Source of the DNA: Polymyxa betae A26-41 | Lineage: Eukaryota; Protista; Endomyxa: Phytomyxea | Assembly (NCBI GenBank): GCA_003693705.1 | Contig: RBZT01000846.1 | Coordinates: 62,001-126,000 of the forward strand | Reading direction: 5' to 3' | DNA: 64,000 bases | Shown here: positions 1 to 8,004 of the stretch, in pieces | How the letters are laid out: each line of letters begins with the position of its first letter | Position numbering within the stretch: the stretch's first letter is position 1 | The notes under the pieces: model-generated | The model's input: the letters and a program-made list of their open reading frames with translations, nothing else | Databases searched by the model: none | What the model was told of the DNA's origin: nothing | Made by a program: the position numbers and the translations under genes

Positions 1-1100
1 CAGTTCAATGTCAATAATGTGCTTGCTACTAACATCCTCAATTCTGATTACTTCCGAGAACTCTTGTGAGCTGTTGAATCTGTCTTTGATGTTGATTCTA
101 ACACGTAATTAGCGCTTTGAAAACCTTTCACGAAGTCATGCAAGAAGTTCTGAAGAAGGTGACCCATCTAGAAGCATTGACAATCGGTCAGACTCGTCTA
201 CCCAGTACAGCATTTTGCCTTCTTTACAAATTATTTACATTGAAGTTAACGGTGAAACAGCTCTGCTCGATGCTGTCGGAGAAGAAACCTCCCTTTGTTA
301 GAGGTCTTGGACTTCTCTATTTGCGATTCGTCCATCCCCCTAAACAGCTATGGCATTGGTTTGCACCGGTACTGAAGGACGCCACCGTTTTCTATCCGTC
401 TGGTCAATCAGCCCCATCTATGACTTTAGGAGACTTTGCTAAAAAGCTGCTAACCGAGCTGCAATATCCCGGCATCCTTTTGCCCCGGATTCCTGTTCCC
501 GTTCTGCGCGAATACAAAAAACTTATTCTTACGGGCGCCGACTCCCGTACGGAACCTGTATTCAACGACAACGACAATGAAGAAGAGCTCCCTGAATCGT
601 CATCAATTGCTCCTGGTTCTTTAGTACGTGCCCAATATTATGACGACGGGAAATACTACGATGCTGTAATCAAGGAGATATTTCCAGGCGGCAAATATCG
701 TGTGGCTTTTGTCGACTATGACGACGAGGAATCCGAGGTTCGCGGCTCAGCCATTAAACCTATAAGCGAAAGGAAACAAAAAGAAAAAGATCGTAAAAAC
801 AAAGAGCGCGATATTGAGGAGCAGATTCGCCGGCAAGAAAGAGCGTCAGCGCTTGCGCACGGAAAAGATTATGCTTCGAGACCAGCGAGCTGTAAAGCCA
901 CCATGTCCATCAACGAGCACAAACGTCGCCGGTCCAGGACCCCTCCACGTCGTGAACGCGAAGTCGTCAAGAAGATCATCAGGCCGCCTTCCCCGGTTCG
1001 TCCGGCCCCGTCTAGCCGTGCAAATCCCGAATTGTCAAAACGCCAGGCCGAACTGCTGGCCAGATACGGCGATGCGAGCGCCAATAAAAAGCCAGCTTGA
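1..1100 (+). CDS. PRPF38B: Pre-mRNA splicing factor PRP38B-like protein with internal Tudor domain (5' end outside window)
   Basis: PRP38 motifs NILNSDYFREL, PSTAFCLLYKLFTLKLT, RGLGLLYLRF, LPRIPVPV; Tudor-like segment GSLVRAQYYDDGKYYDAVI...YRVAFVDYDDEESEV; RS-rich tail; GT-AG intron ~66-112; TGA at 1098-1100. Confidence 0.85.
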
Positions 1101-1400
1101 AACTTGGCTTGGTAAACCGCCTCTGTCGGGTAGTGCGAACCTGAGTCCGTGGTGTGTCTATGTTGGGATCTGTTGGGGTCCATATAGAGGCTATTGAATG
1201 AATGTGCTTTAGGGGTAGTGGGCTGCTCTTAATATTATCATCGGTGAAGTCGGAGCATCGGCCGCCAATCATCTCCTTCAGCAAACCCGTCATCGTTATC
1301 TGATCTTGACGAACCCCCAGCTGGTCACACAGCCGCCATCGCCGTATTCACAGCAGGTTGTTGCGCGGCCGATTTTTGATTGGCGCATCACGCGTCGCCA

Positions 1401-2462
1401 ATGATGAAGAGGCTCTGGGCCGAAGCTTTGGAATTGGTGCGCCAGGGCGGCGCTACGCACGTCCTTCTCAAATACACCGATAGAGCAGGACGCCATCACG
1501 AGGTCCCGGTCTCGATCGGGACCCTCAACGACGACAGTCTTGACACCGGCATCCGTCTCGACAATGGCGACCTGGTGTTCCCGAACCCGACCACGGCGGT
1601 CCTGAACCCGTTCTTGGCACATTGCCCTCTAATCTCCTTCTCCTGCGATCTGCAGCGACGATCGGACGATTTCATGAACTTCAGCCAGTTCGATGTGAAA
1701 GATATCGATGCGTTGACGACATCGGAAATGCTGTCGTTGTTCCCTGAACGTGAAGACGAATTCCGTCAGTCGAATGTCATGACGGGCGACCCTGAGCAGA
1801 AGCTGTCTGTATCGCCGGCGGTCATGATCCCACAGACGCCAGCCCCGGCGTCTCCTAAAGCGCCATCGGCACTCAAGCCGAAGCGAAGCGAATCGACAGC
1901 CTCGACTCCCGGCGAACATCGCGGCACCAGTTGCCATCAATGTAAAAACGCTCGCAGCCTCGAACATCTGGCGTACTGCTCGAAACTGTTTAGCAAGCGC
2001 ACGTCGCATGATATGAGACATTGCCGCAAGAAGTTCTGTCAAGGCTGTCTGACCAAGTTCTATGGCGACTCGATTGAGAACTCGAAGATCGCTGGCTGGA
2101 TCTGTCCGTCCTGTCGTGGGCAATGCCGATGTGCTGCATGCGAGCGAAAACGTCGCAAATCGTCGACTCCGGCAACGTCGGCACTCCCGACCCCGGCTGT
2201 TAGCCCGAAAAGCAGTCTCTCTGGCGCCGGCGTCTTTTCGCACGATTTCGTCGAACTGATCGGTGGCGATCAGGTCCGAGCTTCGGGCGGCAGCCCATCG
2301 CTTCCTGATGAACACGTCGAAGACGAAGGATTCGTGGATTTGCCGGGCGGGAAGGTTGTCAAAGCTCGGCGTCCAAGCAGAGTGCAGCCGTACCCGTCGT
2401 CGCCGAAGCCTGCCGAGCCCAGCGATTACGATATCCAGCGATTACAGCCTCATACTTCGTAG
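1401..2462 (+). CDS. Fusion protein: glutamine synthetase N-terminal (beta-grasp)-like domain + zf-4CXXC_R1 (CDCA7/R1-type) zinc finger
   Basis: Intronless ORF, ATG 1401. N-term VLLKYTDRAGRHHEVPV...GIRLD...DLVFPNPTTAVLNPFLA...CDL resembles GlnA N-domain. Zinc finger CHQC...C...C..KFCQGCLTKFYG...WICPSCRGQCRCAAC at ~1932-2145. Confidence 0.8.
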   Translation: MMKRLWAEALELVRQGGATHVLLKYTDRAGRHHEVPVSIGTLNDDSLDTGIRLDNGDLVFPNPTTAVLNPFLAHCPLISFSCDLQRRSDDFMNFSQFDVKDIDALTTSEMLSLFPEREDEFRQSNVMTGDPEQKLSVSPAVMIPQTPAPASPKAPSALKPKRSESTASTPGEHRGTSCHQCKNARSLEHLAYCSKLFSKRTSHDMRHCRKKFCQGCLTKFYGDSIENSKIAGWICPSCRGQCRCAACERKRRKSSTPATSALPTPAVSPKSSLSGAGVFSHDFVELIGGDQVRASGGSPSLPDEHVEDEGFVDLPGGKVVKARRPSRVQPYPSSPKPAEPSDYDIQRLQPHTS

Positions 2463-2589
2463 AGGTGGCGTTGGACTACAATACCTTCATTGCAGTGAAA
2501 GATATTTTGCGATGATGAGGTCGGCCTCAGTATCAGCGAACCCTCTCTGCCCGTATTCGTTTTCTTGCTGCTCTTGAGACACTCGAATC

Positions 2590-3241
2590 ATCCATAGTTT
2601 AATGAATATCAAATATGAGATTACCCGGAGTCGTCTCCTTTGCAGTTAGCTGCTTTTATATATGTGTGTGACGCTCTCGTCGCCAACACGTGCCGGCCTG
2701 GGTTTGGCCTTCTTGTCGCGTCTGCTTCTCGAGAATGTTGAACAGTTTTAGAGGAGGCAGAACAAGCTCCGATTTCAACTTTTTCTCTCGAGCTGGCTCT
2801 CCTAATGTCTGCTCAGCTTCTAAAATGTAGCGGTTATTTGAGGGCAAGCAGGCTTCAATAGCGATTACGTAGTTTCTTGTTGAATTGCGTCCTTTCGTAG
2901 AGCATCTTAACGGTCTGTAGTCGTTGTGCGCCCTGACTTCTCCTAGAGGTCCCTCGTTGCATCGAGAATCTCGAATGCGATTTGAACTGTACTTGACGCT
3001 TTATGACGGATATCGGAACGTACGACTATCTGGTAACATACAGAATGGTCTTTATCATCGATTGCGATGAACAAAGACGGGAGAACGATGCTCAGACCGG
3101 ACGTACCGAAATAAACTGTATCGGGATGGGGATCACGAATCTTTCCCCTCGTGCTCTGAACCCAATCCTTTTTTATCGGCTGCTCGGGCTCTATGCGAGG
3201 CGGTTTCGTGAACAAACTCCGGCTGGCGGTTCCGTTCATTT
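2590..3241 (-). CDS. Possible multi-exon hypothetical protein
   Basis: Short minus-strand ORFs (2656-2847, 2943-3248) can be joined through plausible GT-AG introns; no recognisable motif; competing plus-strand ORF 3003-3293. Confidence 0.25.
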
Positions 3242-3368: not shown

Positions 3369-4241
3369 TTAGATCTTGTAGCTGTTCAGTAAAGTAATCC
3401 TTAAGGAATGGCCTCGGTAGACCTGACCGAGATGCCGCTTCAAGGCGCAGATAGCATCCTCTACCCGTGGGAATAATATTTCAGCATACGGCTTCAGGTC
3501 CTCGCTCTCATACAAATCGGCGCTGAGGATGTCATGCTCTGGAAAGACCTTCATGACGATCTCCTGCCCGGTTACGTCTAATGGCAAATTCTGAACTAAT
3601 AGTACGCCGGGATGTAATCCGTTCCCGAACAGCTCTGGATACGCTTGAAGGCTTTTCATTTTGAATCTGGAGGGCGCTGTCGGCTGCGGTTGGGGTTTCG
3701 GTTCGGTGATATTTTCTGACGTCGTCGGATTCGACGAAGTCGAAGTCTGAGGACGCTGAGATGGAGGTTCTCGCTGAGATGGAGGTTCCGGTTCATTTCT
3801 CTTTTCCGAAAGCAAACTCGGTGTCGACAAGCCATTCTCAAGCTTGAACTTCTTCGAAGCCAGCTCTGGCTTTGCAGAAGGAGCCGGTTCATTTCGAAAT
3901 TTTTTGCTCATTAGAACAATCGACGGTTTGCCATCGCTGACAGGAGACGACATCGACACTGGAGTTTCGTCTTTCCTTCTGACGGCCGTCTCATTCGGAA
4001 TCACGATCTGCAATTTGGTCGACGGCTCGTGATCGCGGCTGGGAAAGCGCCTGGGCGACACGTAATCGCGGCTGGAATGGCGCCGGGGTGACCGGCTGTG
4101 TCGCCTGGGCGACCTGTACTCGCGGCTGGAATGGCGTTTGAACGACGAATCGTAGCTGTTGCGTCGCCTAGATCTGGGCGGCGACCGGGCATCATCACGA
4201 ACCCGACGCCTGCCATTGACAAGGTTGAGAGTAACGCTCAT
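3369..4241 (-). CDS. RS/SP-rich protein with C-terminal RRM domain
   Basis: 290 aa intronless ORF; N-terminal RHSSR..SPR repeats; RRM-like LLVQNLPLDVT...KPYAEILFPRVEDAICALKRHLGQVYRGHSLRI. Confidence 0.75.
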   Translation of the reverse strand: MSVTLNLVNGRRRVRDDARSPPRSRRRNSYDSSFKRHSSREYRSPRRHSRSPRRHSSRDYVSPRRFPSRDHEPSTKLQIVIPNETAVRRKDETPVSMSSPVSDGKPSIVLMSKKFRNEPAPSAKPELASKKFKLENGLSTPSLLSEKRNEPEPPSQREPPSQRPQTSTSSNPTTSENITEPKPQPQPTAPSRFKMKSLQAYPELFGNGLHPGVLLVQNLPLDVTGQEIVMKVFPEHDILSADLYESEDLKPYAEILFPRVEDAICALKRHLGQVYRGHSLRITLLNSYKI

Positions 4242-6198: not shown

Positions 6199-6454
6199 AA
6201 TTCCCCAACATAGTTATTTGTTTGTACATGACCGCAATCTCCGAGAAGACCATTGATGTTGAAGAAGCATGAATGCGTTCGTTGCTGCCGAAATTTAGCA
6301 ATAAAAACCCGCTTCTTGCATCTAGAGGTTGCAAGATCTCTCATCCTTCTGTTAGAGTGTAGTCCGAAGTTGACACTCTGGGACAATAAGCTGCAGCGAA
6401 GTGGTACAGTACGATGTACAATTTCATCACATCAATTGTCTGCAGGCGAAGAAC

Positions 6455-8004
6455 ATGTTGCGACGACGCCAACCAGATACTTTCGTAGTAGACAACATCA
6501 GCATTGATGACAAACAGAAGAGAAGACGGCCGCTGTCGATTTCGATATCATTGTTTCTTCTGATCCTTGTCTGCATCACGATCTTTCTGTTAACAAATCT
6601 GTCCCTCAACAAACGAACGTTGAAATATGCAGCTACATTCGTGTATTCAGATGAAGATGCGCCTTACAAAAACGAGCCCGTGAGGGAATATCGCAAACGG
6701 CTCGGCAAGCAATTGATGCAGAAAATTCCGGATACGATCTTTGTTTCGATCGCAAGCTACCGAGATGATGCCTGTCCTGAAACATTGGCAGATATGTTCA
6801 AGAAGGCAGCACATCCTGAAAGAATAACTGTCGGTTTAGTGGATCAGACTAATCTGGACAACCCGGAGACAGACGACATCTTTTGTGATGCCCTCCTGAC
6901 TCCAGAACAAAGGAAACAAACCCGACTTATTCGTATGGGGCATAAAGCTGCCCGAGGTCCGACTTATGCACGATTTCTGGCATCAAAACTGTGGGAATAT
7001 GAGCAATACTACATGCAGATTGATGCTCATTCGGAGTTCGCTCAGAACTGGGACCAGATGCTGATTGATAACTTGAGAACATTTCCTGATCCGGATCGCT
7101 ACGTAATCACACATTATCCTCCAGGGGAACCCACCGACTTAACACCAGAATCACCCGTCACCTGGATTTGTGCCGCTGAAGATCACGAACAGGCGCCTCT
7201 GGGACTGTTCGTGCAATCGCAAGACGTCTGTTGGGATGTGAATCAGTCGCCAGATCTGCCATCGGGAACATGTGTGTCGCCATTCATGGGCGGTGGGCTG
7301 TTCTTCGGAAGCGCTGATATGCTGATGGACGCTCCATATGATAAACATCTAGATTATCTGTTCCATGGTGAAGAGGTCCTCATTGTAAGTGATTCACCTA
7401 GCAGATTGCGATTACAGCTGATGGATCAGCATAGGCTGCAAGGCTATGGACCAGAGGATATAATCTGGTGACACCCAGGAAGAATGTATTGAGCCATACT
7501 TACGGTGGAAGAGAGAAGAATGTGTACGGAGATGGGATTGATGGTGAGGCTGCAAGGAGATCTGAAGCAAGAGTACGTCTGCTGATGGATGCTCTGGTTG
7601 AAAGCGATGAAGATGGAGCGGGGATTCCTCAAGACGAGATCGACGATCTCGGAATGGGGACGGTCCGCAGCATTGATGAATATAAAGAGTTCGCTGGTAT
7701 CAATCAGATGGGTCAAAAACAGTTCTCCTCAAGATGCAGGCAGCGGTTTCAGGATGGGCAATGGATCGATGTCAACAGTAATGGCAGCGGTCCTGAAGAC
7801 GGGGGAGAATCTAACGAAGATAACCCCGACGTCGTTGAGGAAGACAATCCAGACAAAGGCCAAGAAGATAACCCAGAAGAACCAGAAAACAACGAAGAGG
7901 AAAACCAAGAGAATCTTGAAGAGGAGCCAAACGAGGACACTCTTGAAGAGACGCAAGACGACAGCGATGACGTTATCGAAGAAGATAATAATGATGAAAT
8001 GTAA
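6455..8004 (+). CDS. GT60-family UDP-GlcNAc:polypeptide N-acetylglucosaminyltransferase (type II membrane, Skp1-GlcNAc-T-like) with acidic tail
   Basis: TM anchor then TIFVSIASYRD, GPTYARFLA, YYMQIDAHSEF (DxH), YLFHGEE; intron ~7385-7433; Glu/Asp-rich C-terminus. Confidence 0.85.

Follow-up and report, generated by a model that had tools for sequence, protein, structure and literature searches.

What is the N-terminal domain of a glutamine synthetase (GS) doing at the head of a zinc-finger protein? The question is raised by one gene in the window, the 64,000-nucleotide stretch of a Polymyxa betae A26-41 contig (RBZT01000846.1) that was analysed here. The predicted 353-aa protein consists, in order, of a beta-grasp domain of type I GS (GSI), a disordered linker, a zf-4CXXC_R1 finger and a disordered tail. 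The features of the locus are:

117..1100, plus strand: PRP38-family neighbour, used as a synteny marker (PRP38 domain E 9e-32, then a Tudor domain E 4e-4)
1263..2623, plus strand: likely transcript extent, as covered by variant contigs (~97% identical) from a run presumed to be RNA
1401..2462, plus strand: GS-N/zf-4CXXC_R1 fusion, a single-exon open reading frame of 353 aa without internal stop (ATG at 1401, second ATG at 1404)
1413..1652, plus strand: non-catalytic N-terminal beta-grasp domain of GSI type, aa ~5-84, assigned by profiles and an AF2 model
1659..1916, plus strand: disordered Ser/Pro-rich linker, aa 87-172, in the predicted model (4-25% identity beyond the closest relatives)
1917..2171, plus strand: divergent zf-4CXXC_R1 finger, aa 173-257, with 11 cysteines and a basic insert and without the CDCA7 class I residues
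2172..2459, plus strand: disordered tail with short motifs common to plasmodiophorid members (e.g., aa 296-304)

The fusion is real. The reading frame is uninterrupted, the finger scores over its Pfam cut-off, and the N-terminal domain is confirmed by a family profile and a structural model. Alignment of homologues shows that they share the start site of this frame. The full-length predicted model (pTM 0.32) has two ordered domains with no inter-domain packing seen; the remainder is disordered, including the Ser/Pro linker that the original prediction had described. Contigs of the ~97% identical variant cover 1263-2623 with zero splice joints and leave both flanks uncovered, such contigs from a run guessed to be RNA being no proof of strand, ends or expression. 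A raw RNA run held no reads of this stretch. Within the coding sequence the variant differs from the window by 27 synonymous and 8 non-synonymous changes. Contig cover and substitution pattern fit a gene that is unspliced and under selection, with the N-terminal domain as part of it. Across the family, conservation is highest in the finger (50-98% identity), and the N-terminal domain shows 22-56% identity beyond the closest relatives. In those closest relatives it is 90% identical, versus 63-65% for the linker. The surroundings are ordinary, with a GlcNAc-transferase (PF11397) gene and an SR-rich RRM gene at 6401-7471 (+) and 3369-4241 (-). In the PRP38-family splicing factor at 117-1100 (+), the Tudor domain lies C-terminal to the PRP38 domain.

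Searched alone, the N-terminal piece has one Pfam match, to Gln-synt_N (E 0.0015, ~34 residues). The Pfam check thus names the right family and stays under threshold, at 18.5-19 bits versus a gathering cut-off of 33.4 for PF03951 (best family member E 4.4e-6). A single-sequence PDB search returned GS chains at E 0.011-0.4, and we regard the single-sequence matches to GS in Pfam, NCBIfam and PDB as suggestive only. Profile and structure matches are significant. The family profile of the domain was built from twelve homologues that share it. Among solved GSI structures, this profile matches proteobacterial and cyanobacterial GlnA best (E 1.7e-10 to 1.8e-8), and Bacillus, actinobacterial and archaeal GS are matched more weakly. 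In a search of 1.84 billion proteins, the members of the fusion family rank at the top and GS sequences come next. A reverse profile made only of GS enzymes, chosen by similarity to the fusion family, gives the window domain 38.6 bits; its 50 shuffles reach no more than 1.1 and the reversed sequence scores -2.0, and 22 of 22 fusion domains outscore their own shuffles. Homology between the fusion and GS N-domains is therefore significant in both directions.

Structural comparison points to the same source. The AF2 model of the domain (pLDDT 87) aligns to GSI with VIA Z scores of 10.2 and 10.1 (81 aligned, rmsd 2.6-2.9), versus 3.7 for human GSII and 4.0 for the best non-GS fold, and all rows shown by Foldseek were GS at probability 1.0. 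An Atlas structure search also led to GS-N, and an Atlas feature search with aa 1-90 stayed at chance level, with no score above 0.80. A GS-type beta-grasp fold is thus predicted for the domain. Because profiles in both directions and fold matches all lead to GSI, the by-eye recognition of a GSI/GlnA domain was right, with the correction that the quoted GS-like peptide starts at 1461 and not at 1419. The domain is also an orphan, as had been claimed: Gln-synt_C (PF00120) has no match anywhere in the 353-aa protein, where disorder and the finger follow the N-terminal domain.

The domain has changed in ways that are shared by the family:

1500..1502, plus strand: Glu34, conserved and family-specific (16 of 21 fusion domains have Glu, 97% of the compared GS enzymes His)
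1557..1571, plus strand: site of the deleted GS Asp50 loop, aa 53-57 (~11-12 residues missing)
1605..1613, plus strand: Asn69-Pro-Phe, the form that GS Asp-Pro-Phe takes specifically in this family (19 of 21 fusion domains have Asn, 99% of GS enzymes Asp)

Compared with 134 GS N-domains, the fusion domains keep G30, G50, P61, P70, F71 and C82. Lost family-wide are the entire DGSS...SDM loop, the first-strand Asp and a Gln-His pair, and the equivalents of GS D22, Q33/H34 and F53 are changed. None of the 21 aligned domains keeps the Asp50 loop; in plasmodiophorids and Leptophrys it is deleted, and several environmental members carry unrelated sequence in its place. The loop deletion was thus correctly spotted at the outset. 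The Asp50-equivalent named at the outset (Asp54 here) is not conserved among family members. Both the model and the alignment retain the strands flanking the deletion and the Pro-Phe motif. We considered Asn-Pro-Phe as an EH-domain ligand and set this aside because the motif sits within the folded domain. In GS, the N-domain is chiefly responsible for ring association, and the Asp50 loop serves the active site of the neighbouring subunit (PMC10799026). Since catalytic domain and Asp50 loop are both absent from the predicted protein, it cannot be a glutamine synthetase.

The GS complement of this organism was examined in the whole draft genome (27,085,814 bases in 1001 contigs), taking spliced genes exon by exon. 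The only GS genes seen there are a GSII on contig C233 and the following divergent gene:

C839, ~383981-385471, minus strand: intron-containing GlnA-like gene; the tested exon is closest to a structure named 'type III glutamate-ammonia ligase', a methylamide-synthetase-type ligase

Its product is possibly a gamma-glutamyl-amine ligase in a protist, judging from this match. A canonical GSI enzyme was not found by the exon-wise search of the genome, and the fusion N-domain profile did not detect the genome's own GS genes. The proposal that the domain docks on, senses or poisons a GS ring is weakened, because the neighbour-contacting loop and the candidate ring-contact residues are gone family-wide and the genome offers only GSII and the divergent GlnA-like gene. 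The other option then raised, a repurposed interaction module, is the best reading.

The second domain belongs to zf-4CXXC_R1, a finger confined to eukaryotes. It matches PF10497 at E 7.6e-13 (48.9 bits versus a cut-off of 22.7) and has all eleven signature cysteines (178, 181, 193, 208, 213, 216, 235, 238, 242, 244 and 247), so that it is complete, as had been stated. Two smaller features lie within it:

1944..1949, plus strand: Lys182-Asn183, found in every fusion member aligned, where CDCA7 has its base-reading pair R274-Q275
2145..2159, plus strand: basic RKRRK patch in the last predicted (C-terminal) helix of the finger, putatively an NLS or a DNA-backbone contact

The segment GTSCHQCKN is invariant in 20 of 20 aligned fusion members. 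The RKRRK patch is present as claimed; its NLS-like sense is putative. It sits in the last helix of the finger and is not conserved in distant family members. The finger shares with CDCA7 its family, fold, 11 cysteines and disordered scaffold. Unlike CDCA7, it has a shifted fourth Cys and a basic insert, and human CDCA7 R274, Q275, G294 and R304 are replaced by K182, N183, K210 and F220. A class I zf-4CXXC_R1 requires the three ICF residues R274, G294 and R304 (PMC10538959), and R274/Q275 of CDCA7 read hemimethylated CpG (PMC11343034). A CDCA7-type function is therefore not supported, as the finger is without the methyl-CpG-reading residues and the exon-wise search of this draft genome gave no match to a C5-methyltransferase (PF00145). 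On its residues, the finger is not a class I CDCA7. CpG observed/expected in the window is 0.97, i.e., there is no CpG depletion. In Plasmodiophora brassicae, none of DNMT, UHRF1, HELLS and CDCA7 was detected, and eleven 'other zf-4CXXC_R1' proteins are present (PMC10538959 supplement).

Related fingers in this genome number ten, all of one divergent type. Seven further zf-4CXXC_R1 genes lie on C1, C70, C355, C455, C620 (two in tandem) and C720, and the N-domain profile has no match in any of the seven. They are candidates for a lineage-expanded, uncharacterised family of predicted transcription factors. Most fingers of the same subfamily are without the N-domain, which is thus dispensable for the finger.

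Both domains occur together in ~21 sequences from independent assemblies. This genome has three fusion genes (the studied gene on C32, and paralogues on C690 and C545) and P. brassicae has two, PBRA_003582 and PBRA_002960. PBRA_003582 adjoins PRP38, as the studied gene does, with PRP38 on the opposite strand in P. brassicae. The fusion is also present in the free-living vampyrellid amoeba Leptophrys vorax (EukProt EP00475), and therefore predates the split between Phytomyxea and Vampyrellida. Environmental eukaryotes with the fusion have ordinary eukaryotic neighbour genes. Based on phylogenetic analysis, their N-domains group with Leptophrys (SH-aLRT 89), and a citrate synthase beside the fusion on L020 groups with the enzyme of this genome (97/96) in a one-exon tree whose set held plant, amoebozoan and opisthokont rows and no other named SAR taxon. 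Because of these two groupings, the environmental carriers are probably Rhizaria. The fusion-carrying eukaryotes of L020 and L024 have very compact, apparently intron-poor gene arrays. Three short matches, P0015, P0018 and P0119, break off behind the N-domain, perhaps because they are first exons.

Given ~21 members across plasmodiophorids, a vampyrellid and environmental eukaryotes, we read this as an old endomyxan (Rhizaria) gene and not a recent transfer. The original prediction had taken the intronless, GC-rich gene (58% GC) as consistent with a shuffled or horizontally derived domain. As a sign of recent transfer this is not supported, and recent transfer is rejected, given the 47% GC of the C690 paralogue, an apparent intron in the finger of the C545 paralogue, the synteny in P. 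brassicae and the Leptophrys fusion.

Ultimately the N-domain is predicted to derive from a GS of type I, with bacterial GlnA as the nearest kind. A quick N-domain tree (102 columns, long branches, a GS set biased by the query) places the fusion domains on one side of a branch with a weak SH-aLRT of 77, too weak to name the donor. Because the finger tree did not resolve, a single fusion event is likely rather than shown. Full-length bacterial GS-like proteins that are without the same Asp50 loop were seen on P0027, P0073 and L043 (5001-6266); the P0027 gene follows a FecCD/ABC transporter pair near cobU. Proteins of the P0027/P0073 type fall, weakly supported, near the fusion side of the tree and are probably convergent pseudo-enzymes. 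A 4424-aa protein with seven Gln-synt_N and six Gln-synt_C stretches (P0019/P0157; MDX9701877.1, from a Ca. Auribacterota MAG) is either a polyprotein of GS units in tandem or a product of faulty assembly.

The GSI scaffold is put to structural or regulatory use in lengsin (among the AF2 fold matches), FluG, NodGS and Bacillus GS-TnrA/GlnR. To our knowledge, all of these keep the large catalytic-type domain, and none consists of an N-domain by itself joined to a nucleic-acid-binding finger. The fusion domain is homologous in sequence and fold to the N-domain of type I GS (GlnA, GSI-beta; PF03951), with the N-terminal helix, the two-strand hairpin and the Gly, Pro, Pro-Phe and Cys positions invariant, and among solved structures proteobacterial and cyanobacterial GlnA match it best. 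It differs in lacking the catalytic domain and Asp50 loop, in the His to Glu and Asp-Pro-Phe to Asn-Pro-Phe changes, and in being fused to a eukaryotic finger. GS beta-grasp domains are otherwise known for little architectural diversity (PMC1949818). A divergent zf-4CXXC_R1 finger is combined with a second functional domain in plant DDR1-3 (DDT and WHIM1), in IBM1/JMJ24 and DMM-1 (JmjC) and in proteins with a chromo domain; those partners are chromatin domains, whereas here the partner is a piece of a metabolic enzyme. The 'other zf-4CXXC_R1' list of Funabiki et al. 2023 (PMC10538959) includes CEO94768 and CEP03200, the P. brassicae homologues of the fusion gene. That study aligned the finger; the word 'glutamine' is absent from its main text and 'Gln-synt' from its supplements. 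Public names of homologues say only 'zinc-finger domain-containing', and the literature searched, in which subscription papers are under-represented, holds no description of the GS-N/zf-4CXXC_R1 pairing. The architecture, unfamiliar from the start, and the free-standing GS-N domain are thus apparently new, both component domains being known.

We anticipate that the gene product is probably a gene regulator, still putative. In our best reading, whose chances we judge roughly even, it is a DNA-binding regulator in which the finger would read unmethylated DNA and the GS-derived domain is predicted to bind proteins. It would be an old endomyxan nuclear regulator. Its two domains fold separately, are joined by a flexible tether and have been kept together in plasmodiophorids as well as in a vampyrellid; nuclear localization and specific DNA binding are putative. 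The finger, one of about ten lineage-expanded, transcription-factor-like fingers, could bind unmethylated DNA via Lys182 and Asn183, in place of the CDCA7 base-reading pair, and via the basic insert. The beta-grasp would have been reshaped into a GS-independent protein-interaction module, serving self-association, pairing among the three paralogues or cofactor recruitment. In the alignment, E34 and N69 are newly fixed while GS residues that are near-invariant among the enzymes are lost, and the ancestral job of the domain was protein-protein contact in ring assembly (PMC10799026). Against this reading, DNA binding is established for CDCA7 and not for divergent zf-4CXXC_R1, and most fingers of the subfamily do without the N-domain. 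Furthermore, most of the conserved N-domain residues look structural and are common to GS, so that a new binding surface would rest on two positions.

If the targets of the finger were instead nucleosomes or histones, or DNA regardless of its sequence (or if the finger were RING-like), the beta-grasp might recruit a remodeller or modifier. Other divergent zf-4CXXC_R1 domains are paired with chromatin domains (DDT/WHIM, chromo, JmjC; PMC10538959), and the nearest Atlas structures of this finger are zf-4CXXC_R1 proteins carrying such domains. Such a chromatin adaptor is nevertheless unlikely, as this protein has no chromatin enzyme domain, and a family that has expanded tenfold in this lineage, with variation in the residues that follow CHQCK, would be more transcription-factor-like. 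Quite unlikely, too, is a small-molecule sensor, perhaps dimeric, that would respond to glutamate, glutamine, 2-oxoglutarate or another metabolite as a one-component metabolic regulator. Small-ligand binding is the usual role in the fasciclin-like beta-grasp group, to which GS-N is assigned (PMC1949818), an archaeal GS binds 2-oxoglutarate partly via N-domain residues, and E34 and N69 are conserved and polar. However, the insert that forms the ligand interface is the deleted part, known GS ligand sites require the catalytic domain, and no conserved basic cluster was seen in the family alignment.

We consider it improbable that the N-domain docks on the GSII or GlnA-like enzyme, so that the factor is sequestered or released by nitrogen status as in Bacillus. 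Ring association is the main role of the domain in GS (PMC10799026), the loop-flanking strands and Pro-Phe motif are kept, and C839 carries a GSI-related gene. On the other side stand the loss in all members of the loop that reaches the active site, the changed D22, Q33/H34 and F53 equivalents, the canonical GSI not found in the genome, a family profile that misses the organism's own GS, and a fit to human GSII of only Z 3.7. In addition, TnrA and GlnR contact GS through their own tails and not via a GS domain. The broader idea that a GS ring-assembly domain became the sensing module of a nitrogen-status transcription factor, through the organism's own GS or a nitrogen metabolite, making a eukaryotic counterpart of GS-TnrA/GlnR by fusion, is doubtful. 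Two further readings are rejected. A functionless relic, or an assembly or annotation artefact, might be suspected from an N-domain that evolves fast and scores below the Pfam cut-off. It is very improbable given the same architecture in ~21 sequences, an N-domain far better kept than the linker in the closest relatives, the P. brassicae synteny and the presence of the whole window DNA in six runs from two studies (one possibly its source). A CDCA7-like hemimethyl-CpG sensor for HELLS, for which the common Pfam family and fold would speak, is hardly conceivable with all four CDCA7 residues replaced, no C5-methyltransferase match in the draft genome, no CpG depletion, and neither DNMTs nor HELLS detected in P. 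brassicae.

The preferred reading, a DNA-binding regulator with a GS-derived interaction domain, would make this a clear case of an enzyme piece, freed of its catalytic partner, recruited into what is probably a gene regulator. Outside the enzyme, the ancient GS beta-grasp domain is hardly known to occur. As the fusion has been kept across Phytomyxea and Vampyrellida, it is a possible marker gene of these Rhizaria, in which database annotation stops at the zinc finger. The only link of the gene to nitrogen here is the ancestry of the domain; if the domain does sense nitrogen, this would be a new eukaryotic nitrogen-signalling route. Little is known of gene control in the parasites that cause clubroot or transmit rhizomania, and the family provides candidate transcription regulators for them. 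It also allows the role of zf-4CXXC_R1 to be examined in organisms without DNA methylation.
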